Below, in pieces: positions 32,369-50,799 of a stretch of DNA of 64,000 nt. Within the stretch, counting starts at the first letter, position 1. Each line of letters opens with the position of its first letter. Under the pieces are notes generated by a model. The model saw nothing but the letters and a program-made list of their open reading frames with translations, did no database searches and was not told where the DNA came from. The stretch covers positions 186,001 to 250,000 of IMG/VR virus record IMGVR_UViG_3300032236_002285, one strand, 5' to 3'. The position numbers were made by a program, and so were the translations under genes.

Positions 32369-32457
32369 ATTTGGTAGAATTAAAACTTTTTACTAATTTT
32401 GTATAAAATAAGAACAAAAATAACAAAAGAGACAATAACTTTTTAATATATAAAGAA

Positions 32458-32565
32458 ATGAGAACAAATAATACACATAAACATTTTAGTAAATCGAATA
32501 AGTGGTTTAGCAACCAGTTCGGTACTGAAAGTGTATTGCTCTCAAATAAGATGTTAAAAGTCTAA
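32458..32565 (+). CDS. attenuator leader peptide 1 (His/Phe/Trp)
   Basis: MRTNNTHKHFSKSNKWFSNQFGTESVLLSNKMLKV; between promoter 32370-32401 and terminator. Confidence 0.75.
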   Translation: MRTNNTHKHFSKSNKWFSNQFGTESVLLSNKMLKV

Positions 32566-32584
32566 TTTTAGATAAACAATATTC

Positions 32585-32620
32585 AAAAGTCCGAACTTCA
32601 AAAAAGTTCGGACTTTTTTG
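32585..32620 (+). terminator. attenuator terminator 1
   Basis: AAAAGTCCGAACTT / AAGTTCGGACTTTT followed by T run. Confidence 0.9.
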
Positions 32621-32720: not shown

Positions 32721-32796
32721 GGAACCTAAGCTAATCAGGTGAAAGCACTGGACTGAAAATCCAGGGAGCCCGGATCGTTACCGGGAGGTTCCACCA
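32721..32796 (+). tRNA. tRNA-Phe(GAA)
   Basis: CTGGA-CTGAAAA-TCCAG; CCA encoded; atypical T-loop ATCGTTA. Confidence 0.85.
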
Positions 32797-32804
32797 AAAT
32801 AAAT

Positions 32805-32878
32805 GGTGTATGTAGCTCAATCGGTAGAGCGTCGGTTTGTGGAGCCGAAGGTAGCGGGATCGTAACCCGTCATTCACC
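32805..32878 (+). tRNA. tRNA-His(GUG)
   Basis: TCGGT-TTGTGGA-GCCGA; G-1 and C73. Confidence 0.85.
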
Positions 32879-32883
32879 CAAAA

Positions 32884-32955
32884 GGAGACTTAGCTGAGAC
32901 GGTTTAGCGTTTGGTTGAAGCCCAAAAGAGGTCGGTTCGATTCCGGCAGTCTCCA
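32884..32955 (+). tRNA. tRNA-Phe(GAA)
   Basis: TTTGG-TTGAAGC-CCAAA. Confidence 0.8.
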
Positions 32956-32961
32956 CAACAT

Positions 32962-33032
32962 ACGTCATACAGACAAGGTGTCGGTCAGGTCTCCAAAACC
33001 TCGACGGTGGGGTTCGATTCCTCAATGGCGTG
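32962..33032 (+). tRNA. tRNA-Trp(CCA)
   Basis: AGGT-CTCCAAA-ACCT; G73. Confidence 0.8.
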
Positions 33033-33038
33033 CTAAAT

Positions 33039-33110
33039 ACGGGTATGGTGTAATGGCTAACATTTTGGTCTCCAAAACCAAAGATCTTGATTCGAATTCA
33101 GGTACCCGTG
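33039..33110 (+). tRNA. tRNA-Trp(CCA)
   Basis: TTGGT-CTCCAAA-ACCAA; G73. Confidence 0.85.
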
Positions 33111-33174
33111 CTAAAAGGTTCGTGTCTTTTTTTGATGTTTCGGACTTAATATATAGAATAAATAAGTTTTATAT

Positions 33175-33717
33175 ATGAAAGAGGAAATATTAAAGTTAAG
33201 AAGTGAAGGTAAGACTTTTAATGAAATAAAAGAAATACTAAAATGTTCAAAATCTACAATATCTTACCATTGTAGTGATGAACAAAAAGAAAAATCTAGA
33301 AATAGAACTAGAAAAAGAAGAGAGAATTTAATTCACTCTAAACTTGAAAGTTTTATCTATAGAAAAGAAAAAAATGTAAAAGAAGGAATAAGAAAGTTTC
33401 AAAAAACTGACTCAAATTCTAAAGGAAGGGTTAATAGTAATATTAAAACAACATTTAATTGGGTTGATGTTTTGAATAAGTTTGGTGAAAATACATATTG
33501 TTATTTGTCTGGAGAGAAAATTAACCTATATGAAGATAACTACAACTTTGACCATATTATACCAGTTAGTAAAAATGGTAGTAATAGTTTAGAAAACTTA
33601 GGAATTCTACACGAAAAAGTAAATAGAATGAAATCTGACTTATCACCAGAAGAATTAATAGAATGGTGTAAAAAGATTTTAGAGTTTAATAATTATAAAA
33701 TAGAAAAATTAGATTAA
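33175..33717 (+). mobile_element. HTH-HNH endonuclease inserted in tRNA array
   Basis: DHIIPVSKNGSNSLENLGILHEKVNRMKSD. Confidence 0.85.
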
Positions 33718-33791
33718 GAGTATGAAAACTAAATTGAAATATAAACGCTAGGCAACGATTCGAGTCACGGATCGTTGCCCTCAACAACAAT

Positions 33792-33871: not shown

Positions 33872-33958
33872 GGTTCTGTCGCTTAGCGGCTATAGCAACT
33901 GGCTTTTAACCAGTAGAGATAATGTTCTCAACCGTGGGTTCGAGTCCCACCAGGACCA
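33872..33958 (+). tRNA. tRNA-Lys(UUU) with long variable arm
   Basis: ACTGG-CTTTTAA-CCAGT then GAGA-taatgt-TCTC arm. Confidence 0.8.
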
Positions 33959-33966
33959 CTAAAAAC

Positions 33967-34050
33967 ACTCCTGTCGCTCAGAGGTCGAGAGCAACTGGCT
34001 TTTAACCAGTAGACGCAAGTCCATCGTAGGTTCGAATCCTACCAGGAGTA
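33967..34050 (+). tRNA. tRNA-Lys(UUU) with long variable arm
   Basis: ACTGG-CTTTTAA-CCAGT then GAC-GCAA-GTC arm. Confidence 0.8.
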
Positions 34051-34054
34051 CTAA

Positions 34055-34137
34055 CGATTCGTCGCATAGTGGCTATTGCACCTGACTCTTAATCAGGCGA
34101 AGAAATTCAATCGTGGGTTCGAGTCCCACCGGGTCGA
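34055..34137 (+). tRNA. tRNA-Lys(CUU) with long variable arm
   Basis: CCTGA-CTCTTAA-TCAGG then GAA-gaaa-TTC arm. Confidence 0.8.
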
Positions 34138-34145
34138 CAAAAAAT

Positions 34146-34432: not shown

Positions 34433-35065
34433 ATGGAAATAAAATTAGAAAGTACTTACAAAGGAACAAGGATTCTTTTTAAGGACAGCGCTAAAAATAA
34501 AAGAAAGTTACTAAATAGCATGATTGATATTTTAGAATCATATGGTTATCAGGAAATAATGATACCTATTATTCAAAAACAAGAAACATTTCAGTCAAAA
34601 GTTGGTGATGAAAACAGAAATATGATGTTTAACTTCAAAGACAGAGGTGATAGAGATTTGTGTTTATCTCCAGAGTACACGGCAATTGTTCAACAATTAT
34701 CAAGTGATAAAATGAAATATGATAAAGATGTAAAAATGTTTTATATCGGTGAATGTTTCAGAGGAGAAAATACACAATCTGGAAGATGGAGACAATTTAC
34801 ACAATTTGGAGTTGAAGTTATAAATCCAAGTAAAGATTATACTGATGAAATGGTTGAAATTGCCAGTAAACTAATTGAGTTAGTTACAAAAAATTATGAA
34901 GTAAATCTGGAAACTACAAGAGGACTTGACTACTACAAAGGTGGAAAAGGATTTGAAATTGCTTGTCCCGAATTAGGATCATCTAAGCAAATTTGTGGAG
35001 GTGGTTCATATGATGGTGGTATTGGATTTGCTGTTGGTGTAGATAGATTACTATTATGTAAATAA
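34433..35065 (+). CDS. minimal histidyl-tRNA synthetase-like catalytic core (no anticodon-binding domain)
   Basis: Motif 1 GYQEIMIPII, LSPEYTA, motif 2 FRGENTQSGRWRQFTQFGVE, GLDYY, motif 3 GGGSYD-GGIGFAVGVDRL; only 210 aa. Confidence 0.8.
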   Translation: MEIKLESTYKGTRILFKDSAKNKRKLLNSMIDILESYGYQEIMIPIIQKQETFQSKVGDENRNMMFNFKDRGDRDLCLSPEYTAIVQQLSSDKMKYDKDVKMFYIGECFRGENTQSGRWRQFTQFGVEVINPSKDYTDEMVEIASKLIELVTKNYEVNLETTRGLDYYKGGKGFEIACPELGSSKQICGGGSYDGGIGFAVGVDRLLLCK

Positions 35066-35281: not shown

Positions 35282-35359
35282 ATGAAAACAATTATGCTTA
35301 CATCGAAGTCGTCAAGTAGTCGCTCGTCAAAACCGAGTGAGGTTCGATCGTATTCATAA
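35282..35359 (+). CDS. attenuator leader peptide 2 (Ser/Arg)
   Basis: MKTIMLTSKSSSSRSSKPSEVRSYS; 10 Ser and 2 Arg in 25 aa; promoter 35212-35243. Confidence 0.85.
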   Translation: MKTIMLTSKSSSSRSSKPSEVRSYS

Positions 35360-35382
35360 TATTCGTATAAAGATATTTTATG

Positions 35383-35415
35383 AAACCCTCGAACTTAATG
35401 TTTGAGGGTTTTTTT
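35383..35415 (+). terminator. attenuator terminator 2
   Basis: AAACCCTCGAAC-ttaat-GTTTGAGGGTTT followed by T run. Confidence 0.9.
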
Positions 35416-35426
35416 GTTTTATATAT

Positions 35427-35501
35427 GGTTCTATAGTTTAAATGGATAAAACACTCGGCTACGAACCGAGAGACGTGAAGGTTCGAATCCTTCTGGAACT
35501 A
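35427..35501 (+). tRNA. tRNA-Arg(ACG)
   Basis: CTCGG-CTACGAA-CCGAG. Confidence 0.9.
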
Positions 35502-35507
35502 CAAATT

Positions 35508-35598
35508 GGAGAAGTCAACCGAAATTGGTATCGGCCTAGTCTTGAAAACTAGTCATCGGCGATGAGTTGGTGTGTCGGTTCGAGTCCGACCTTCTCCG
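35508..35598 (+). tRNA. tRNA-Ser(UGA)
   Basis: CTAGT-CTTGAAA-ACTAG, long V arm, G73. Confidence 0.9.
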
Positions 35599-35603
35599 CA
35601 ACC

Positions 35604-35689
35604 GGAAGGAGTCCGAATGGACGAGGAACTTGTCTTGAAAACAAGCGGCTGTAAAAGGTTTGGGGGTTCGATTCCCTCTTCTTCCGCCA
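35604..35689 (+). tRNA. tRNA-Ser(UGA)
   Basis: CTTGT-CTTGAAA-ACAAG, G73, CCA. Confidence 0.9.
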
Positions 35690-35691
35690 AT

Positions 35692-35777
35692 GGAGAGTAA
35701 AGTAGCCAGGGTGCTACCACCGCCTGCTAAGCGAGTGGCCCATTAATTTGGGTGTGATTCGAGTTCACTGCTCTCCG
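35692..35777 (+). tRNA. tRNA-Ser(GCU)
   Basis: CGC-CTGCTAA-GCG, long V arm, G73. Confidence 0.85.
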
Positions 35778-35789
35778 CAAAAGATAACT

Positions 35790-35876
35790 GGAGAGTTGTC
35801 CGAGTGGTTTATGGAGCACGCTTGGAAAGCGTGTGTACTCGAAAGGGTACCGAAGGTTCGAATCCTTCACTCTCCG
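35790..35876 (+). tRNA. tRNA-Ser(GGA)
   Basis: CACGC-TTGGAAA-GCGTG, long V arm, G73. Confidence 0.9.
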
Positions 35877-35891
35877 CAAAAAAATTATATT

Positions 35892-44997: not shown

Positions 44998-45073
44998 AAA
45001 TTTTATTGTATATTTGTAAAAAATAAGAAAAGGGACTAAACTTTTTTAATATATACACATACAATAAAAACAT

Positions 45074-45145
45074 TGCGGGGTAGAGAAGAGGCATCTCGCC
45101 AGGCTCATAACCTGGAGGTCAGTGGTTCGAATCCACTCCCCGCTA
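45074..45145 (+). tRNA. initiator tRNA-fMet(CAU)
   Basis: 1:72 mismatch, CCAGG-CTCATAA-CCTGG. Confidence 0.85.
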
Positions 45146-45309
45146 CAAATAGAAAGACAGGACAAATATCTGATCAGCCCCAAGAAGGTAGGGTAGAGTA
45201 CTCTGAACAAGTCTTTCTAAGGAATTAAAAAAATATTAAAAATATTTGGTGAAATAAAAATTTCACCGTATATTTGTAAAACAATTAAGAAATTATAAAA
45301 ACTAAAACA

Positions 45310-45387
45310 ATGACAACTATTACTAACATAGCGTATTATTATGAGGGAGAGCGTAGCTCAAACGTCAGACTAATGTCTATGTCGTAA
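45310..45387 (+). CDS. attenuator leader peptide 3 (Tyr/Glu)
   Basis: MTTITNIAYYYEGERSSNVRLMSMS; promoter 45245-45276. Confidence 0.85.
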   Translation: MTTITNIAYYYEGERSSNVRLMSMS

Positions 45388-45409
45388 TGGTTTCATTATG
45401 ATATTTTCT

Positions 45410-45440
45410 AACCCAGTCTGACTTTCAGACTGGGTTTTTT
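45410..45440 (+). terminator. attenuator terminator 3
   Basis: AACCCAGTCTG-acttt-CAGACTGGGTT followed by T run. Confidence 0.9.
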
Positions 45441-45546: not shown

Positions 45547-45618
45547 GGTCCTGTCGACTAATGGTCAGGTTACAAGACTTTCAATCTTGAGATGCGGGTT
45601 CGATTCCCGTCAGGACTA
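45547..45618 (+). tRNA. tRNA-Glu(UUC)
   Basis: CAAGA-CTTTCAA-TCTTG. Confidence 0.9.
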
Positions 45619-45625
45619 CAAATAT

Positions 45626-45711
45626 GCTACGGTATGCAAACCGGAATAAGCGACCAGACTTTCAATCTGGACATCGAAAGATGTGTGCGGGTTCGAGCCC
45701 CGTCCGTAGTA
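45626..45711 (+). tRNA. tRNA-Glu(UUC) with long variable arm
   Basis: CCAGA-CTTTCAA-TCTGG then ACATC-GAAA-GATGT. Confidence 0.8.
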
Positions 45712-45718
45712 CAAATAA

Positions 45719-45802
45719 GGGAGAGCGCCAACGTTGGAGAGTTGGGCTTGTCTGTAAAACAAGTGGCTTACGCCTGAGTGGGTTCGATTCCCACCTCTCC
45801 CA
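45719..45802 (+). tRNA. tRNA-Tyr(GUA)
   Basis: CTTGT-CTGTAAA-ACAAG, V arm. Confidence 0.85.
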
Positions 45803-46103
45803 CAAAAAATTAAACAAAAAAAATGAAAAGTTGAAAGTGAAAGATGATAATTATGTTGGTAGTTATCTTTTTATCAAAACCAGTAATGTCACAGAACATT
45901 ATTAAATACCAACAAAAAACAAAAATTGATTTGAGATTAAATAAGTCAATTGAAAACCAAAAGGTTCTTTTTAAGAAAACTAAATTAGAATCTGATAACT
46001 TTGAAATTAAAATTAGTCACGATTAGCTGATTAATAAAAAGTTTAGAATCAGGTTTACTTTATGTTTAGACATGAAAGAATTTTTTACCAAAGAGTAAAA
46101 AAT

Positions 46104-46176
46104 GATGCTATCGACTAATGGTTTAGGTCGCCATCCTCTCAAGGTGGAAATACGGGTTCGAATCCCGTTAGCATTA
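46104..46176 (+). tRNA. tRNA-Glu(CUC)
   Basis: CCATC-CTCTCAA-GGTGG. Confidence 0.9.
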
Positions 46177-46241
46177 CAAAAAATTAAACAAATGTTTGGA
46201 TATTAAAAAAGTATCCTTATCTTTGTAAAAGAATAAAAAAT

Positions 46242-46313
46242 GGTCCCGTCGTCTAATGGTTAGGACAATGCCCTTTCACGGCATAGATTTCGGTTCAAAT
46301 CCGTGCGGGACTA
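46242..46313 (+). tRNA. tRNA-Glu(UUC)
   Basis: ATGCC-CTTTCAC-GGCAT. Confidence 0.9.
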
Positions 46314-46402
46314 CAATAAAAACAGATAACTCCGGTATGGTCTCAATCATTACTTAGAACCGGGCTTTGGAAAGTTACAAGTTGAGATTCTGTTTTTTAT
46401 AT

Positions 46403-46485
46403 TGGAAGGTGGCCGAGTGGTTAATGGCGCTTGACTGTAAATCAAGTCTCTTGCGAGTACGGGGGTTCGAATCCCTCCCTTCCAA
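46403..46485 (+). tRNA. tRNA-Tyr(GUA)
   Basis: CTTGA-CTGTAAA-TCAAG, V arm. Confidence 0.9.
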
Positions 46486-46550
46486 CAAAAATAAAAAAAA
46501 TTAAAAGGGAAGACAAAACTTTTTATATATACATTAATATAATTAAAACG

Positions 46551-46631
46551 ATGAAAAATTTAACTAACATATCAACAGCAATCATAGGAGGCGGCGCGGG
46601 AGCGAATGTCACTGGCTGGACTATGTTATAA
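46551..46631 (+). CDS. attenuator leader peptide 4 (Gly/Ala/Ile)
   Basis: MKNLTNISTAIIGGGAGANVTGWTML. Confidence 0.85.
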   Translation: MKNLTNISTAIIGGGAGANVTGWTML

Positions 46632-46655
46632 TCTTTCATCAAAAGAATTAAACGT

Positions 46656-46688
46656 AACCCAGTCAGTGAAAATTGACTGGGTTTTTTT
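46656..46688 (+). terminator. attenuator terminator 4
   Basis: AACCCAGTCAGT-GAAA-ATTGACTGGGTT followed by T run. Confidence 0.9.
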
Positions 46689-46692
46689 ATTT

Positions 46693-46776
46693 CGGCAGGT
46701 ACCGATGGTGTCTTATACACACTATAACCGTAGCGGGAAGTTGAAAACGTGGGTTCGAATCCCACCCTGCCGACCA
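46693..46776 (+). tRNA. D-arm-deficient tRNA-like gene, anticodon UAU (Ile-like)
   Basis: CGGCAGG/CCTGCCG acceptor, A73-CCA, canonical T arm, GGTGT-CTTATAC-ACACT, long V region, almost no D arm. Confidence 0.5.
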
Positions 46777-46836
46777 ACTGAGAAAACAGTAAATCGTGAG
46801 CCAACACTAAAACCATCCCACCAGGATGTAAAACTC

Positions 46837-46908
46837 GCGGGTATCGTATAGTGGCTATTACTCCTTCCTTCCAAGTAGGAGACGTCGGTTCGATTCCGGC
46901 TACCCGCT
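46837..46908 (+). tRNA. tRNA-Gly(UCC)
   Basis: Loop CT-TCC-AA; GCG acceptor, U73. Confidence 0.9.
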
Positions 46909-46916
46909 CAAATTTT

Positions 46917-46991
46917 GGGGTCACATGTACCAAGGCTAGGCGATGATGCTTTGCAAGCATCGTGTGGTGAGTTCGATTCTCACTGGCTCCA
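46917..46991 (+). tRNA. tRNA-Ala(UGC)
   Basis: GATGC-TTTGCAA-GCATC; G3:U70. Confidence 0.85.
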
Positions 46992-47010
46992 CAAAAAATG
47001 AATAGTAAAA

Positions 47011-47178
47011 ATGACTATATTCAAATATTTAGTAGATGGAAAACTTTACTTCTTGTACAATGGAGTAAATGGATATATTGCTATACCATTTGAGCATAGT
47101 GGAAATACTATATCAAATCCAAATCTTGATGAATTTGTACCAGTGAAAATGGGCAATGGTTCTGATGGATTTGTATAA
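47011..47178 (+). CDS. small hypothetical protein (55 aa) inside tRNA array
   Basis: Hand translation MTIFKYLVDGKLYFLYNGVNGYIAIPFEHSGNTISNPNLDEFVPVKMGNGSDGFV. Confidence 0.5.
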   Translation: MTIFKYLVDGKLYFLYNGVNGYIAIPFEHSGNTISNPNLDEFVPVKMGNGSDGFV

Positions 47179-47181
47179 AAT

Positions 47182-47256
47182 GCGAAAGTCGTATAGTGGC
47201 TATTATATCAGCTTGCCAAGCTGAGGACGGCAGTTCGATTCTGCTCTTTCGCTCCA
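47182..47256 (+). tRNA. tRNA-Gly(GCC)
   Basis: TCAGC-TTGCCAA-GCTGA; U73-CCA. Confidence 0.9.
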
Positions 47257-47260
47257 ATAT

Positions 47261-47298
47261 GCCGGATGATCCACCGTTGAATCGCGGTGCCGGCTCCA
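47261..47298 (+). ncRNA. tRNA minihelix-like element (acceptor plus T-like arm, ends UCCA)
   Basis: GCCGG/CCGGC and CACCG/CGGTG stems, TTGAATCG loop. Confidence 0.5.
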
Positions 47299-47372
47299 GG
47301 GGAATTAGCTCATTTGGCTAGAGCGCTTGTCTGGCAGACAAGAGGTGACGAGTTCAAATCTCGTATTCTCCA
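47299..47372 (+). tRNA. tRNA-Ala(GGC)
   Basis: CTTGT-CTGGCAG-ACAAG; G3:U70. Confidence 0.9.
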
Positions 47373-47379
47373 CTAATAA

Positions 47380-47459
47380 GCGGGTGTCGTATAGTGGCAC
47401 GTAGTAGATTATGCCGGTCTTCCAAACCGGAGATGTGAGTTCGATTCTCATCACCCGCT
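47380..47459 (+). tRNA. tRNA-Gly(UCC) with enlarged D-loop
   Basis: CCGGT-CTTCCAA-ACCGG; U73. Confidence 0.85.
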
Positions 47460-47461
47460 CA

Positions 47462-47605
47462 AAGATAGTAGTAATGTACGAGTGTTACTTCGTATTTCCA
47501 ACGACTAGTTCAGGTTCGAATCCTGGGTTCCGCTCAAATGATAATATGCGGGATTAGTGTAACGGTAGCACAGTAAAAACACACTCAGCAAATTTTCTCT
47601 ATCTT
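47462..47605 (+). tRNA. circularly permuted tRNA (Gly-type acceptor) flanked by the split insert module
   Basis: 3' half (anticodon, T arm, GTTCCGC-T) at 47491-47534 precedes 5' half (GCGGGAT plus D arm) at 47548-47574; flanks pair AAGATAG/CTATCTT and GAGTGT/ACACTC. Confidence 0.7.
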
Positions 47606-47609
47606 ATTA

Positions 47610-47679
47610 GGGCCAGATGCCAACGGCAGGTCAACTCGCTTGCACCGAGATTGTTTGGGTTCGATTCCCACTGTGTCCA
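47610..47679 (+). tRNA. degenerate tRNA-Ala(UGC)-like gene
   Basis: CTCG-CTTGCAC-CGAG; G3:U70-like pair; bulged acceptor. Confidence 0.5.
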
Positions 47680-47835
47680 CTATATTTATTTTTCATAGCT
47701 ACCTAAACTTCAATATATTAATTATATATATACCATTAGATTAGATTAAAGAAAGGTTTTTAGACAGTTTAGTATTTTTAGATTAAAGAATGACTTGAAG
47801 TTAGACAATTAACTAAAAAATAACTATGCTAAAAA

Positions 47836-50799
47836 ATGAAAAAGATCCTAAAGTTCTTACTAGTGTCATTGACTCTAGTATTTTTTGTGCCTAAACAAGC
47901 ACAAGCCTCTCATTGCGCTGGAGCTGAATTATTATTCCAATGGCTTCATGACTCAACTTATCAACTTTATTACAAGTTTTACCGTGATTGTGCCGGTATT
48001 AATGAGCCAACAAATGTTACAGTTTGTTGTAGTAACAATTGTAATTCAACTACAATCAACGTAATTTTAAACAAAGTTACTACACTTATTCCTCCTGGTG
48101 TAAATAATGGAAATGAAGTTGCTAGAGTTTGTCCTGGTATACATACCACTTGTGGTAATCCAGCCGGAACAACACCTGGCTACAGAGAATGGTGGTATGC
48201 TAATACTGTAACTCTACCATCAAGATGTAACCACTGGACTTTTTCAGTAAGTCAGTCAGCTAGAAACTCTGGTATTACTAATTTATCTAATCCAGGTTCT
48301 CAAAATCTTTATACAGAAGCCACACTTGATAATAGAGATGCTCAAGGTGATACCTCACCTTTCTTTTCTGTTAAGCCGGTCCCGTATATCTGTGCTAATA
48401 TACCATACACTTATAACAATGGAGCTTATGACTTAAATAACGACTCTATGGTGTTTAAAATTGTTCAACCAAATGGTGGCTCAGGTTGTCCTCCAACCAC
48501 GTCAGCCATTGCTTTTGCTAATACAACACCAAGTTTAAATCTAACTGATAATCCTTTACAAACAAACAATACTTTTTCTATAAATGCTCAAAATGGATTG
48601 ATGAGTTTTACTCCAGCTGGAACACAAATTGCAGTTGTAACTATTCAAGTAGATGAATATAGAAATGGTAGAAAAATTGGTTCTGTAATGCGTGATATTC
48701 AAATTATTGTTTTGTCTTGTAATGTTCAGCAACCAGAAGTAAATATATCTGCTGCTTCTTTAAATAATGCAACTCTTGATAATAATGGAAACATTACAGC
48801 TTGTGCTGGAACACCTTTTAGTTTTTGTTTTGATGCTACAACACCAGATTCAAATGGTATTTTACTCGCATCTGATAACTCAAATATTGTAATGCCTAAT
48901 TCAGTAGTATCATATACTAATCAAACTACAGATACGGTTACTGGTTGTTTTTCTTGGTGGCCTTCTGTGTATGATACAGGTTATAAAATTTTTACAATAA
49001 CTATAATGGATTCATCTTGTCGTCCTCCTGGCTTAATGTTTTCACAAACATTTACCTTACCAATTTATGTTTGGCCTGCGACTAATATTCTAAGTGATAC
49101 CACAATCTGTAGAGGTGGTGCTGCAAATTTACTTGCTGTTGGTGGTGGAAATTTTATTTGGTCGGTTTTACCAGGAGGTTCTGCTTTATCAACTTTAAAC
49201 TGCACAAACTGCTCAAATCCAGTTGCTACTCCAATAATCACAACTCAGTATGTAGCTACATCTCAAATAACAAATGCTATTTGTAAAAATAAAGATACGG
49301 TAACAGTAGCGGTTATTCAACCATTTCAGATTATACTACCTGATACAACAACATGTGTTAATAATTCTTTACAATTAAATGCAGTAGTTAATACAACAAA
49401 TAATTATACTATATCCTGGACACCAAATACTTATTTAAGTAATGCTGGTATTAATAATCCAATTGTAACACCACCATCTGGTCAATCATTGATAACTTAC
49501 TATGTTAAAGTTTCTTCAATTGGTTCATCAGCTTGTTCAGTTACAGATACATTCAAATTAAAAGTTTTACAAGGATTTACTATCTATAATCATGATACAA
49601 CAATTTGTCTTGGTAAATCAGTAAATATAGCCGGCTCTGGTGATGCTTTATATAATTATACTTGGACACCAACCAGTGGTATAAGTACAATACTTACACC
49701 ATCAATAACACCAAATGTAGTTACAACAACAACGTATATTTTAACAGGTAAATATCCTGGTTGTAAAGATTCTACTAATAAAATTAAAATCACAACAGAA
49801 CCTGTACCAACTGTAGTAGCTGGTGCTGATAGACAAATATGTAGTGGTGATACTATTCATCTTACACCTTTAGTTACTCCAAGTTATCCATATGTTTACA
49901 CTTGGACACCAGGATCTTCATTAGATAATCCAAATTCTGAATTTGCTATCTTTTCAGGATTAATCACAACTCATTTATCACTAACTGTTAAATCACCAGT
50001 TGCTAATTGTTCATCAGCTGATAGTTTAATTATTAATGTAGTTAAACAATCTTTCTTAAAGGTTTCACCACAAGACACTTCAATTTGTCCATCTGATACA
50101 GTTATGATTAAATTAACCACACCTAATGATAAGTTAGTTATTTTTAATTGGAGCCCTCATAATTTTATCAGTGATTATAATTCAGTTAATCCTTATTTAT
50201 ACCCACCAACATCAATGGTTTATACTGCTTGGGCTACTGATACAGCTGGTTGTAATGATACTATATCAGCTTATATTGAAATTAGACCAGGTGCTGTAAT
50301 TGACATGCCTACATCAATTGGTTTATATCCTGGTGATTCTTATCAAATAACACCTCAAACTAACTGTACTAAATTTATTTGGTTTCCATCAAGTGGTTTA
50401 AATTATGACTCATTATCAAATCCAACAGTGACCAACTTAGGAGTTAATACTAAGTATATAGTTATTGGTCAAACAGAATGGGGATGTAAAGTATCTGATT
50501 CAATAAATGTAATGGTTATTAATGATTCTTATATTGATATACCTAATGCTTTTTCACCTACAGGTGATCACAATAAAACACTAAAAGTAATTCATTTAGG
50601 TTCTGCTACTCTTGAATATTTTAGAATATACAATAGATGGGGTAATAAAGTTTTTGAAACAAATGATATTAATGTTGGATGGGATGGTACTTATAATGGT
50701 CAAGCTCAATCACAAGGTGTTTATGTTTATGAAGTAAAAGCAATAACATATAAAGGTAGGGTCTTTATTAAACAAGGCAATATAACTTTGATGAAATAA
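47836..50799 (+). CDS. secreted adhesin-like protein with T9SS type-B (gliding motility-associated) C-terminal domain
   Basis: Signal peptide, ASHCAGAE start, Ig/PKD-like repeats, IPNAFSP...FRIYNRWGNKVFE...WDGTYNG...GVYVY...GNITLMK. Confidence 0.9.
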   Translation: MKKILKFLLVSLTLVFFVPKQAQASHCAGAELLFQWLHDSTYQLYYKFYRDCAGINEPTNVTVCCSNNCNSTTINVILNKVTTLIPPGVNNGNEVARVCPGIHTTCGNPAGTTPGYREWWYANTVTLPSRCNHWTFSVSQSARNSGITNLSNPGSQNLYTEATLDNRDAQGDTSPFFSVKPVPYICANIPYTYNNGAYDLNNDSMVFKIVQPNGGSGCPPTTSAIAFANTTPSLNLTDNPLQTNNTFSINAQNGLMSFTPAGTQIAVVTIQVDEYRNGRKIGSVMRDIQIIVLSCNVQQPEVNISAASLNNATLDNNGNITACAGTPFSFCFDATTPDSNGILLASDNSNIVMPNSVVSYTNQTTDTVTGCFSWWPSVYDTGYKIFTITIMDSSCRPPGLMFSQTFTLPIYVWPATNILSDTTICRGGAANLLAVGGGNFIWSVLPGGSALSTLNCTNCSNPVATPIITTQYVATSQITNAICKNKDTVTVAVIQPFQIILPDTTTCVNNSLQLNAVVNTTNNYTISWTPNTYLSNAGINNPIVTPPSGQSLITYYVKVSSIGSSACSVTDTFKLKVLQGFTIYNHDTTICLGKSVNIAGSGDALYNYTWTPTSGISTILTPSITPNVVTTTTYILTGKYPGCKDSTNKIKITTEPVPTVVAGADRQICSGDTIHLTPLVTPSYPYVYTWTPGSSLDNPNSEFAIFSGLITTHLSLTVKSPVANCSSADSLIINVVKQSFLKVSPQDTSICPSDTVMIKLTTPNDKLVIFNWSPHNFISDYNSVNPYLYPPTSMVYTAWATDTAGCNDTISAYIEIRPGAVIDMPTSIGLYPGDSYQITPQTNCTKFIWFPSSGLNYDSLSNPTVTNLGVNTKYIVIGQTEWGCKVSDSINVMVINDSYIDIPNAFSPTGDHNKTLKVIHLGSATLEYFRIYNRWGNKVFETNDINVGWDGTYNGQAQSQGVYVYEVKAITYKGRVFIKQGNITLMK

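Follow-up and report, generated by a model that had tools for sequence, protein, structure and literature searches.

In a huge phage genome of 476 kb, a tiny gene rich in Ile, Gly and Ala codons and followed by an intrinsic terminator is positioned directly in front of the phage's own Ile-like, Gly and Ala tRNA genes. The arrangement is best explained as a ribosome-mediated (leader-peptide) transcription attenuator, which suggests that these tRNAs are made only when ribosomes stall for lack of them. At least seven such units are present in the genome and about 48 of its 53 tRNA genes lie behind one of them. This interpretation is well supported by sequence anatomy, statistical specificity, conservation and covariation, whereas translation of the leader, ribosome stalling, the direction of the switch and the physiological signal are inferred in the absence of transcript, ribosome-profiling or reporter data, and for a host of unknown identity and degree of transcription-translation coupling.

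The window analyzed comprises 64,000 nucleotides, positions 186,001 to 250,000 of the IMG/VR record IMGVR_UViG_3300032236_002285. The unit in question will be denoted as unit 4, and related phage contigs by L numbers. Its elements, the tRNA cluster behind it and three of its six sibling units are as follows.

46195-46225, plus strand: Bacteroidetes-type promoter pattern (TTTG, about 20 nt spacer, TAnnTTTG) upstream of tRNA-Glu 46242 and tRNA-Tyr 46403
46517-46533, plus strand: phage-type promoter-like motif AACTTTTTATATATACA, 18 nt upstream of the leader ATG
46551-46631, plus strand: leader ORF of 26 codons, MKNLTNISTAIIGGGAGANVTGWTML, ATG at 46551, stop TAA at 46629-46631
46578-46604, plus strand: regulatory codon run (codons 10-18) GCA ATC ATA GGA GGC GGC GCG GGA GCG (A I I G G G A G A)
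46605-46672, plus strand: extended antiterminator hairpin, the 2:3 helix plus an inner helix
46609-46619, plus strand: antiterminator 5' arm (segment 2), TCACTGGCTGG
46656-46690, plus strand: intrinsic terminator, stem 46656-46683 (12 bp, 4-nt loop) and T7 at 46682-46688, with its 5' arm 46659-46669 being segment 3 of the antiterminator
46693-46773, plus strand: non-canonical tRNA-Ile(UAU)-like gene with a reduced D-arm and a 22-nt extra arm
46837-46909, plus strand: tRNA-Gly(UCC)
46917-46992, plus strand: tRNA-Ala(UGC) with G3:U70 and an atypical D-arm
47011-47178, plus strand: 55-aa ORF of unknown function inside the tRNA cluster
47182-47256, plus strand: tRNA-Gly(GCC)
47299-47373, plus strand: tRNA-Ala(GGC)
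47380-47459, plus strand: tRNA-Gly(UCC) with an 11-nt insertion in the D-loop
47611-47679, plus strand: weak tRNA-like element with anticodon UGC
45310-45436, plus strand: sibling unit 3, leader MTTITNIAYYYEGERSSNVRLMSMS (45310-45387), antiterminator 45364-45371 with 45415-45422, terminator 45410-45436, followed by tRNA Glu, Glu, Tyr, Glu, Glu, Tyr (45547-46486)
35282-35412, plus strand: sibling unit 2, leader MKTIMLTSKSSSSRSSKPSEVRSYS and terminator 35382-35412, followed by tRNA Arg(ACG), Ser, Ser, Ser (35427-35877)
32458-32617, plus strand: sibling unit 1, leader MRTNNTHKHFSKSNKWFSNQF... and terminator 32585-32617, followed by tRNA Phe, His, Phe, Trp (32721-33111) and, after an HNH gene, Lys x4

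The sequence features noted in the sequence-only reading, which had proposed an attenuator with an Ile/Gly/Ala leader and a 10-nt antiterminator pairing, are confirmed, and its interpretation is supported. CACTGGCTGG at 46610-46619 and CCAGTCAGTG at 46659-46668 pair over 10 bp with one G-U, and RNAduplex extends this helix to 11 bp (46609-46619 with 46659-46669) at -20.1 kcal/mol (z -5.1), an energy reached by 0 of 500 shuffles. The extended antiterminator hairpin has an MFE of -25.6 kcal/mol (z -7.0, 0 of 200 shuffles); the value for the terminator is -18.5 kcal/mol. The regulatory run ends 4 nt before segment 2, which in turn ends 10 nt before the stop codon, a geometry that would allow a terminating ribosome to mask segment 2. 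In most of the 82 distinct units the arm lies between -30 and -1 relative to the stop, while in the long leaders of units 1 and 5 it lies further upstream, so that those need an additional structure. The codons of the run had been matched to the downstream anticodons UAU, UCC, GCC and UGC, which is correct except that ATC is not read by any tRNA of this cluster; tRNA-Ile(GAU) is located in another cluster.

The run of nine consecutive Ala/Ile/Gly codons is unique among 2078 small ORFs of the genome, the next longest run being 5. It employs synonymous codons that are uncommon in this genome, namely GGC (6%), GCG (5%), GGA (20%) and ATA (32% of their families). ATA makes up 70% of the Ile codons in leaders that precede tRNA-Ile(UAU), against 32% genome-wide, and all 19 Arg codons in leaders are readable by the downstream anticodons, against 10.5 expected. 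In sibling unit 2 the Arg codons are CGC and CGA, readable by anticodon ACG, whereas AGA makes up 81% of the Arg codons in the genome.

Each of the seven leaders is enriched in the amino acids of its own downstream tRNAs, and the cognate matching of leaders to tRNA sets is the single best of 5040 permutations. All 7 terminators that lie within 250 nt upstream of a tRNA have a 12-45 aa ORF ending 15-40 nt upstream, against 32 of the 138 other terminators. Each leader also carries a segment complementary to the 5' arm of its own terminator; this cognate assignment ranks 2 of 5040 within the genome, and over 31 representatives with distinct terminators 0 of 100,000 permutations reach the observed sum (z = -9.6). 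In contrast, none of 114 bacterial loci carrying the same terminator sequence has a codon-matched leader-tRNA unit.

Homologues of unit 4 are found in LR756502, LR745206 and more than 30 IMG/VR and metagenome contigs, where the ATG, the I/G/A run, the stop 17-28 nt before the terminator and the Ile(UAU)/Gly/Ala tRNAs are kept. The ATG is invariant, and ORFs of 19-29 aa with this stop position are kept in 37 homologues. The antiterminator core TGGCTG is conserved although it is read as W-L in relatives and as G-W here, and in one subgroup the arm has moved about 10 nt and changed to TGATTGG, yet still pairs. However, the relatives are not phylogenetically independent, so counts across contigs overstate the replication, and the match between leader composition and tRNA set is not perfect in every relative: L001 and L002 have Val codons, and L068 has Lys codons, without a matching tRNA called by ARAGORN in the cluster. 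Of two further pattern searches, AAACTTTTWATATATACA gave mostly unrelated AT-rich matches with only L011, L031 and L041 being useful, and AACATATCAN{5,30}GGCGCGGG likewise gave mostly unrelated matches with only L226 being new. A search on the tRNA-Ile(UAU) anticodon arm found mostly unrelated phages, which have it inside arrays with no leader or terminator, evidence that the arrangement is clade-specific.

Compensatory changes are observed in L226 and L325, where the terminator change from CAGTCA to CAGTCT is matched by a change of the arm from TGGCTG/TGACTG to AGACTG. Within the unit-4 alignment itself covariation of the antiterminator cannot be measured (0 compensatory pairs, 76% paired), because the homologues were collected through the terminator sequence, and RNAalifold on the 37 homologues returns only the terminator as consensus structure. 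In the sibling Glu/Tyr family (23 homologues), however, 83% of cells are paired and 6 of 7 pairs show double changes; 0 of 500 shuffles reach the observed values, and slid controls give 15-41% paired.

These observations bear on the possibility that the small ORF is an ordinary micro-gene for a small hydrophobic peptide and the hairpin simply the terminator of that gene or of the upstream Glu/Tyr tRNA operon, with the tRNAs behind it made by leaky read-through or from an unrecognized promoter and the codon match being coincidental. The peptide is indeed short and partly hydrophobic, and the terminator is well placed to end transcripts from 45245 or 46195. Nevertheless this reading is very unlikely, given the recurrence of the composition match in seven units, the uniqueness of the run, the cognate-specific and covarying complementarity, and the C-terminal peptide sequence, which is not conserved because frame shifts occur, while the RNA segment is. 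Furthermore, the terminator ends 2-3 nt before the first tRNA (2-18 nt in most relatives), leaving no room for a promoter between the T-run and the tRNA start at 46693, and no promoter-like motif lies within the cluster, as inferred from sequence patterns only; on this basis the tRNAs can only be transcribed by read-through.

A translation-independent RNA element, either a tRNA-binding riboswitch of the T-box kind or a processing or stability signal of the polycistronic tRNA precursor, is regarded as similarly improbable. The nucleotide sequence is conserved over much of the leader, including third positions of codons 1-8, and T-boxes also couple tRNA status to a choice between terminator and antiterminator upstream of translation-related genes. 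However, T-boxes bind uncharged tRNA directly without a ribosome, possess a conserved T-box sequence and a specifier loop, and control synthetase, transporter or biosynthesis genes, none of which is present here. No Rfam family matches the leader: there are no non-tRNA hits at gathering score in the window and none at E up to 1 in 46480-47850 apart from chance-level hits, which also excludes a match to the His_leader, Leu_leader, Thr_leader, Trp_leader and other leader families. Moreover, the element always has an ATG, an open frame and a stop at a fixed distance from the terminator, even after indels, contains runs of several codons for several amino acids rather than one specifier, and at about 110 nt is far shorter than a T-box.

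In the proposed mechanism, transcription starts at the promoter-like motif at 46517-46533 or arrives from upstream, and a ribosome translates the leader. The motif TTTTTAATATATA occurs genome-wide 5-35 nt upstream of ATG start codons on both strands and is conserved upstream of the leader in relatives, its promoter function being inferred. Transcripts starting at the Bacteroidetes-type pattern at 46195-46225, of which 16 matches are found in the window against 5.8 expected (0 of 100 shuffles reach 16), would run into the leader. If the regulatory codons are decoded at normal speed, the ribosome would reach the TAA at 46629 and cover the 3' half of segment 2, the terminator would fold and transcription would stop 2-3 nt before the first tRNA. 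If Ile(UAU), Gly(UCC/GCC) or Ala(UGC) aminoacyl-tRNAs are short, the ribosome would stall within 46578 to about 46598, leaving segment 2 free to pair with 46659-46669 as soon as this arm is transcribed; the antiterminator would pre-empt the terminator, RNA polymerase would read into the tRNA genes, and processing would release them from the read-through transcript. Without translation, segment 2 may be held in a hairpin with the upstream coding region, making termination the default state, although this leader-only fold (46576-46579 with 46614-46617 and AACATA with TATGTT, -19.8 kcal/mol) is only marginally more stable than shuffles (z -1.85). In the full-length transcript the minimum-energy fold always contains the terminator, also with a masked ribosome footprint, so the switch must be kinetic. 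Public RNA data gave no information on termination or read-through: besides DNA metagenomes only three RNA-labelled runs were found, which hold 5-7% of the sampled words, are flagged as probably DNA and are contigs without ends or direction.

As the products are the tRNAs that read the sensor codons, the circuit would be a negative feedback supplying phage tRNAs on demand. The sequence-only reading had suggested a test under Gly or Ala limitation, which frames the signal as amino-acid supply. Amino-acid starvation or general translation stress in the host, acting through the same architecture, appears unlikely although a ribosome stalls equally for lack of amino acid or of tRNA, the sequence cannot tell these apart, and classical attenuators respond to the charged-tRNA level (PMC1183508). 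The regulated products are tRNAs rather than biosynthetic enzymes or synthetases, more tRNA does not relieve an amino-acid shortage, and the feedback loop closes only if tRNA supply is the variable; codon choice follows the downstream anticodons, which points to isoacceptor-level sensing.

In order to place the unit among known systems, it was compared to the attenuators of the trp, his, leu, thr, ilv and pheA operons of Proteobacteria. Shared with these are a short ORF with a run of regulatory, uncommon synonymous codons, an intrinsic terminator directly before the regulated genes, a leader segment able to pair with the terminator's 5' arm and a stop codon placed for masking that segment. In the phage, however, the regulated genes are tRNAs, such that the sensed quantity and the product are the same molecule class, the leaders mix two to six amino acids corresponding to the tRNA mix of the cassette, the system is repeated as at least seven modules in one genome, and no sequence or Rfam-model similarity is found. 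The His-leader of hisS/hisZ in Bacilli (PMC2965389) likewise applies leader-peptide attenuation to a component of the translation apparatus, with read-through triggered by slow decoding of the cognate codons, but its product is a protein that charges tRNA and its leader carries a single amino-acid specificity. Clusters of many tRNA genes are known from T4, mycobacteriophages and huge phages (Al-Shayeb et al. 2020), and the nearest database relatives are 634–735-kb uncultured phages. No codon-sensing control of such arrays and no leader-peptide attenuation of tRNA genes was found in the literature searched, which is no proof of novelty, and a 2026 review of jumbo-phage biology mentions tRNAs only as possible aids to translation or as a counter to tRNA cleavage (PMC13282480).

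Phage tRNA genes are usually discussed as constitutive helpers for codon usage or as spares against host tRNA cleavage, the control of their expression being essentially unknown. If the units work as proposed, a virus measures the decoding speed of specific codons and answers by making exactly the tRNAs that read them, which would carry the 50-year-old attenuation model to a new class of target genes and to leaders encoding several amino acids at once. More speculatively, though somewhat more likely than not, a clade of huge phages that probably infect Bacteroidetes would run a genome-wide set of modular codon-specific decoding-rate sensors, in which a cassette of replacement tRNAs is switched on only when the cell's supply of those tRNAs fails, for instance after host shut-off or cleavage by a host anticodon nuclease. 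This would be the first leader-peptide attenuation known to control tRNA genes and a self-regulating tRNA homeostat carried by a virus. PHROGs and Pfam searches of neighbouring ORFs gave no functional link to the unit apart from host hints. With about 140 nt the system is compact and modular and offers natural parts for sensing tRNA or codon availability.

The leader composition also indicates which tRNAs a cassette is meant to supply, including structurally odd tRNAs that standard finders miss. The Ile(UAU)-like gene scores 34.8 bits with the Rfam tRNA model, and its anticodon stem-loop is identical to that of the canonical tRNA-Ile(UAU) at the same position in relatives; the odd form is conserved, with acceptor-stem covariation, in L104, L165, L171, L183 and L202. 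The tRNA-Ala(UGC) is found only with relaxed ARAGORN settings and is homologous to a tRNA-Ala(UGC) that ARAGORN calls in L104, and a tmRNA-like acceptor/T-arm hit covers the same place. The 55-aa ORF within the cluster is conserved at 38-84% identity at the same place in relatives and has no Pfam hit. The second tRNA-Gly(UCC) reaches 54 bits with the Rfam tRNA model, while the weak tRNA-like element at 47611-47679 scores 29.0 bits, exactly at the gathering score.

The 476,236-bp contig has a G+C content of 29.9%, and its nearest relatives in the phage collection are the uncultured 634-735-kb phage genomes LR756502, LR745206, LR756501 and LR756503. ARAGORN finds 53 tRNA genes in the genome and 22 in the window, all of the latter on the + strand, while Rfam finds nothing but tRNAs. 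Two observations point to a Bacteroidetes host. The promoter pattern TTTG-N17-23-TAnnTTTG, which is probably typical of Bacteroidetes, occurs 16 times in the window against 5.8 expected (0 of 100 shuffles reach 16), and the 987-aa protein encoded at 47836-50799 ends in a type IX secretion CHU_C signal domain (E 4e-14).

The sequence-only reading had described a leader of Ile, Gly and Ala codons in front of Ile-like, Gly and Ala tRNAs, together with a 10-nt pairing between the leader and the 5' arm of a terminator. All of these elements are present:
46551 to 46629-46631, leader ORF from ATG to TAA, encoding MKNLTNISTAIIGGGAGANVTGWTML
46578-46604, codons 10-18, GCA ATC ATA GGA GGC GGC GCG GGA GCG
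46610-46619, CACTGGCTGG, complementary with one G-U to the following element
46659-46668, CCAGTCAGTG
46656-46683, stem of a clean intrinsic terminator, followed by T7

Only one detail of that reading is inexact, namely the matching of ATC to the downstream anticodons, as ATC is not read by any tRNA of this cluster. RNAduplex extends the helix to 11 bp (46609-46619 with 46659-46669) at -20.1 kcal/mol, an energy that is reached by none of 500 shuffles of the leader, and the second strand of this helix is the 5' arm of the terminator. The codon run is not a chance feature, since among 2078 ATG ORFs of 17-40 aa in all six frames of the genome it is found in the only one with an A/I/G run longer than 5.

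The tRNA cluster begins at 46693, 2-3 nt after the T-rich tail of the terminator, and contains in this order:
46693-46773 (+), a non-canonical tRNA with anticodon UAU (Rfam 34.8 bits)
tRNA-Gly(UCC) (+)
46917-46992 (+), tRNA-Ala(UGC), seen only with relaxed ARAGORN settings, but carrying G3:U70 and homologous to a called tRNA-Ala(UGC) in a relative
47011-47178, a 55-aa ORF
tRNA-Gly(GCC) and tRNA-Ala(GGC) (+)
tRNA-Gly(UCC) with a D-loop insertion (+)
a weak element with anticodon UGC

The first tRNA of the cluster has the exact anticodon stem-loop of the canonical tRNA-Ile(UAU) of the relatives, but its D-arm is cut to about 4 nt and it possesses a 22-nt extra arm. The same odd form (91 nt) is conserved, with acceptor-stem covariation, in the related contigs L104, L165, L171, L183 and L202, and is therefore maintained rather than decaying. 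The 55-aa ORF is conserved as well (38-84% identity) at the same position in at least nine related contigs, but has no family match. Unusual tRNAs are also found elsewhere in the genome. Next to canonical 73-76-nt tRNAs, the phage carries versions with the same anticodon but a long, paired, class-II-like variable arm (window 33872-33959, 33967-34051, 34055-34138 and 45626-45712; outside the window, genome 255781, 257011, 257626, 257997, 258256 and 272129), namely Lys(UUU) of 88 and 85 nt, Lys(CUU) of 84 nt, Glu(UUC) of 87 nt and, judged by length, also Ile(GAU), Asn, Thr, Met and Gln. Such arms are normally limited to Leu, Ser and bacterial Tyr.

Inspection of the region upstream of every tRNA cluster in the genome depicts the same arrangement seven times, with about 48 of the 53 tRNA genes lying behind such a unit.

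Leaders of the seven units and the tRNAs downstream of them.
Unit 1: MRTNNTHKHFSKSNKWFSNQF...; Phe, His, Phe, Trp (then Lys x4)
Unit 2: MKTIMLTSKSSSSRSSKPSEVRSYS; Arg(ACG), Ser x3
Unit 3: MTTITNIAYYYEGE...; Glu and Tyr x6
Unit 4: the leader at 46551-46631; Ile-like, Gly, Ala
Unit 5: MTTMNLNMNMNLTVVLNTLCI...; Asn, Ile, Leu, Val, Thr, Met (18 genes)
Unit 6: ...NPQPQVVIDQDP...; Asp x5, Pro
Unit 7: MRTTTQYQQQQQINPTD; Gln x3

In order to compare leaders and tRNA sets, the fraction of leader codons whose amino acid is served by the tRNA set of the same unit was scored. The real pairing of the seven leaders with the seven sets is the single best of all 5040 permutations. All 7 strong terminators located within 250 nt upstream of a tRNA have a 12-45-aa ORF ending 15-40 nt upstream, whereas only 32 of the 138 other strong terminators do, and the ORFs of the latter show no codon runs. 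Within unit 1, in the stretch 33175-33751, an HNH endonuclease gene (PHROG hit at E 1e-28) splits the Phe/His/Trp tRNAs from the four Lys tRNAs. Just after it, a 9-codon ORF MKTKLKYKR (33722-33751) and a strong hairpin without a T-run precede the Lys tRNAs, which may be a remnant or a variant sensor. Between the tRNA cassettes, a 210-aa ORF (34433-35065) matches the catalytic core of histidyl-tRNA synthetase (Pfam tRNA-synt_His, E 3e-26), but is much shorter than a full HisRS.

In every unit, a segment in the 3' part of the leader is complementary to the 5' arm of the terminator of that very unit. The cognate assignment ranks 2 of 5040 in this genome. Over 31 representatives with different terminator sequences, drawn from this genome and its relatives, the cognate sum of duplex energies lies 9.6 standard deviations below permuted pairings and is reached by no permutation out of 100,000. 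For unit 4, the antiterminator conformation (46605-46672) is an extended hairpin of -25.6 kcal/mol (z -7.0), while the terminator hairpin amounts to -18.5 kcal/mol. The leader folded alone pairs the coding region around the regulatory codons with segment 2 (46609-46619), as well as AACATA with TATGTT, at -19.8 kcal/mol, which is only marginally better than shuffles (z -1.85). The AACATA element belongs to an N-terminal M-(K/T/R/N)-(T/N)-(I/L)-x-N-I motif that is shared by all leader classes (e.g. 46551-46574 and 45310-45333) and conserved at the nucleotide level, and it can pair with TATGTT just before the stop. Common descent, a need of translation initiation or a closing/pause helix could each account for it. 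Equilibrium folding of the whole transcript always contains the terminator, and therefore, as in classical attenuators, the choice would have to be made kinetically during transcription.

The two closest phage genomes have homologous Glu/Tyr and Ile/Gly/Ala units, and DNA pattern searches of IMG/VR and of metagenome contigs brought in dozens more, resulting in 82 distinct units with 73 distinct leader peptides. The same classes recur, namely I/G/A leaders before Ile(UAU), Gly, Ala; Y/E leaders before Glu, Tyr; poly-Q leaders before Gln x3; S/R leaders before Ser, Arg; N/L/T/V/I leaders before Leu, Asn, Val, Thr, Ile; a K/H/F/W leader before Lys, Trp, His, Phe; and a P/Q/H leader before Pro, His, Lys, Gln. 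In the 37 homologues of unit 4 the ATG is invariant, the ORF is 19-29 codons long, the stop lies 17-28 nt before the terminator, and the terminator ends mostly 9-18 nt before the first tRNA.

Four observations argue that the 3' part of the leader is conserved as RNA rather than as peptide. The core TGGCTG is kept although a 1-nt indel puts it in a different reading frame here (G-W) than in LR756502 and LR745206 (W-L). In one subgroup the arm has moved about 10 nt downstream and changed to TGATTGG, which still pairs with CCAGTCA. In the related contigs L226 and L325 the terminator arm is CAGTCT instead of CAGTCA and the leader arm is AGACTG instead of TGGCTG or TGACTG, a compensatory double change. 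Furthermore, the pairs that extend into the terminator loop differ between the window (CAC with GTG) and the relatives L001 (TG with CA) and L002 (G with C). A formal pair count on the unit-4 alignment cannot show covariation, as those homologues were collected through the terminator sequence; it gives 76% of cells paired against 10-45% in slid controls, with no double changes. In the sibling Glu/Tyr family, which has more varied terminators, the count is clear: 83% of cells are paired, 6 of 7 pairs have changes on both sides and 15 cells carry double changes, with 0 of 500 shuffles reaching the observed values and slid controls giving 15-41% paired.

These findings contradict the view that the small ORF is a stand-alone micro-gene with an ordinary terminator, given the sevenfold recurrence, the frame-independent conservation of the RNA, the cognate-specific and covarying complementarity, and the lack of room for a promoter. 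A ribosome-independent RNA switch is likewise contradicted by the invariant ATG, the maintained frame and stop position, the multi-codon runs and the absence of any Rfam match.

The leaders follow the downstream anticodons and not only the amino acids, although the counts include related sequences and are descriptive only. In leaders that precede tRNA-Ile(UAU), ATA makes up 49 of 70 Ile codons, compared to 32% of Ile codons in the long ORFs of the genome. All 19 Arg codons in leaders are readable by the downstream Arg anticodons, against 10.5 expected, and unit 2 uses CGC and CGA before tRNA-Arg(ACG) although AGA is 81% of the genome's Arg codons. The leader of unit 4 uses GGC and GCG, which are 6% and 5% of their codon families here.

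The geometry of unit 4 is that of a classical attenuator, with the regulatory codons (46578-46604) just upstream of segment 2 (46609-46619), the stop 10 nt downstream of segment 2 and the terminator starting 25 nt after the stop. In the mechanism proposed here, in which translation of the leader, stalling, the direction of the switch and the nature of the signal are inferred, a ribosome stalled with its A site between about 46578 and 46598 would leave segment 2 free to capture the 5' arm of the terminator, and transcription would continue into the tRNA genes. A ribosome that reaches the stop would cover the 3' half of segment 2 and the inner helix of the antiterminator, so that the terminator forms. 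Without translation, segment 2 may be held by the upstream coding region and the terminator would again form. As the products are the tRNAs that decode the sensor codons, the loop would be a negative feedback on tRNA supply. Amino-acid starvation as the signal cannot be excluded from the sequence, but makes little functional sense for tRNA products. The attenuator interpretation is supported by strong computational and comparative evidence, yet experimentally untested.

Such a unit would work like the trp, his, leu and pheA leaders and like the attenuators of synthetase genes, of which hisS/hisZ is an example (PMC2965389); the sensitivity of such systems to aminoacyl-tRNA supply has been treated before (PMC1183508). 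It is not a member of any Rfam leader family or of the T-box family. It differs from the attenuators named here in that it controls tRNA genes, combines several amino acids in one leader, is viral and is repeated as a modular set. No description of such a system was found in the literature searched, which is no proof of novelty, and a 2026 review of jumbo-phage biology mentions tRNAs only as possible translation aids or as a counter to tRNA cleavage (PMC13282480).

Unit 4 could be transcribed from two places:
46517-46533, phage-type promoter-like motif
46195-46225, host-type promoter pattern, via tRNA-Glu and tRNA-Tyr

The family of the former sits in front of many start codons genome-wide. 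The motif TTTTTAATATATA lies 5-35 nt upstream of many ATG start codons on both strands (e.g. window 32437-32452 and 45040-45055; genome 103212, 151037 and 166762) and is probably a phage-specific promoter or 5'-UTR element, which units 1, 5 and 6 carry downstream of a host-type TTTG/TAnnTTTG promoter. A few tRNAs may escape the attenuation control, since tRNA-Met (45074-45146) is preceded by both promoter motifs but no leader, and tRNA-Glu 46242 and tRNA-Tyr 46403 have the host-type promoter at 46195-46225 of their own with no leader.

With respect to other genomes, other phages that carry the same tRNA-Ile(UAU) anticodon arm have it inside arrays with no leader or terminator, and none of 114 bacterial loci with the same terminator sequence has a codon-matched leader-tRNA unit. 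Within the clade, the relative L206 carries a tRNA with anticodon CUA (reported by ARAGORN as 'Pyl(cta)') inside its Glu/Tyr cassette, on the minus strand about 516 nt after the Glu/Tyr terminator, which is a possible amber suppressor and a hint of stop-codon recoding in part of the clade.
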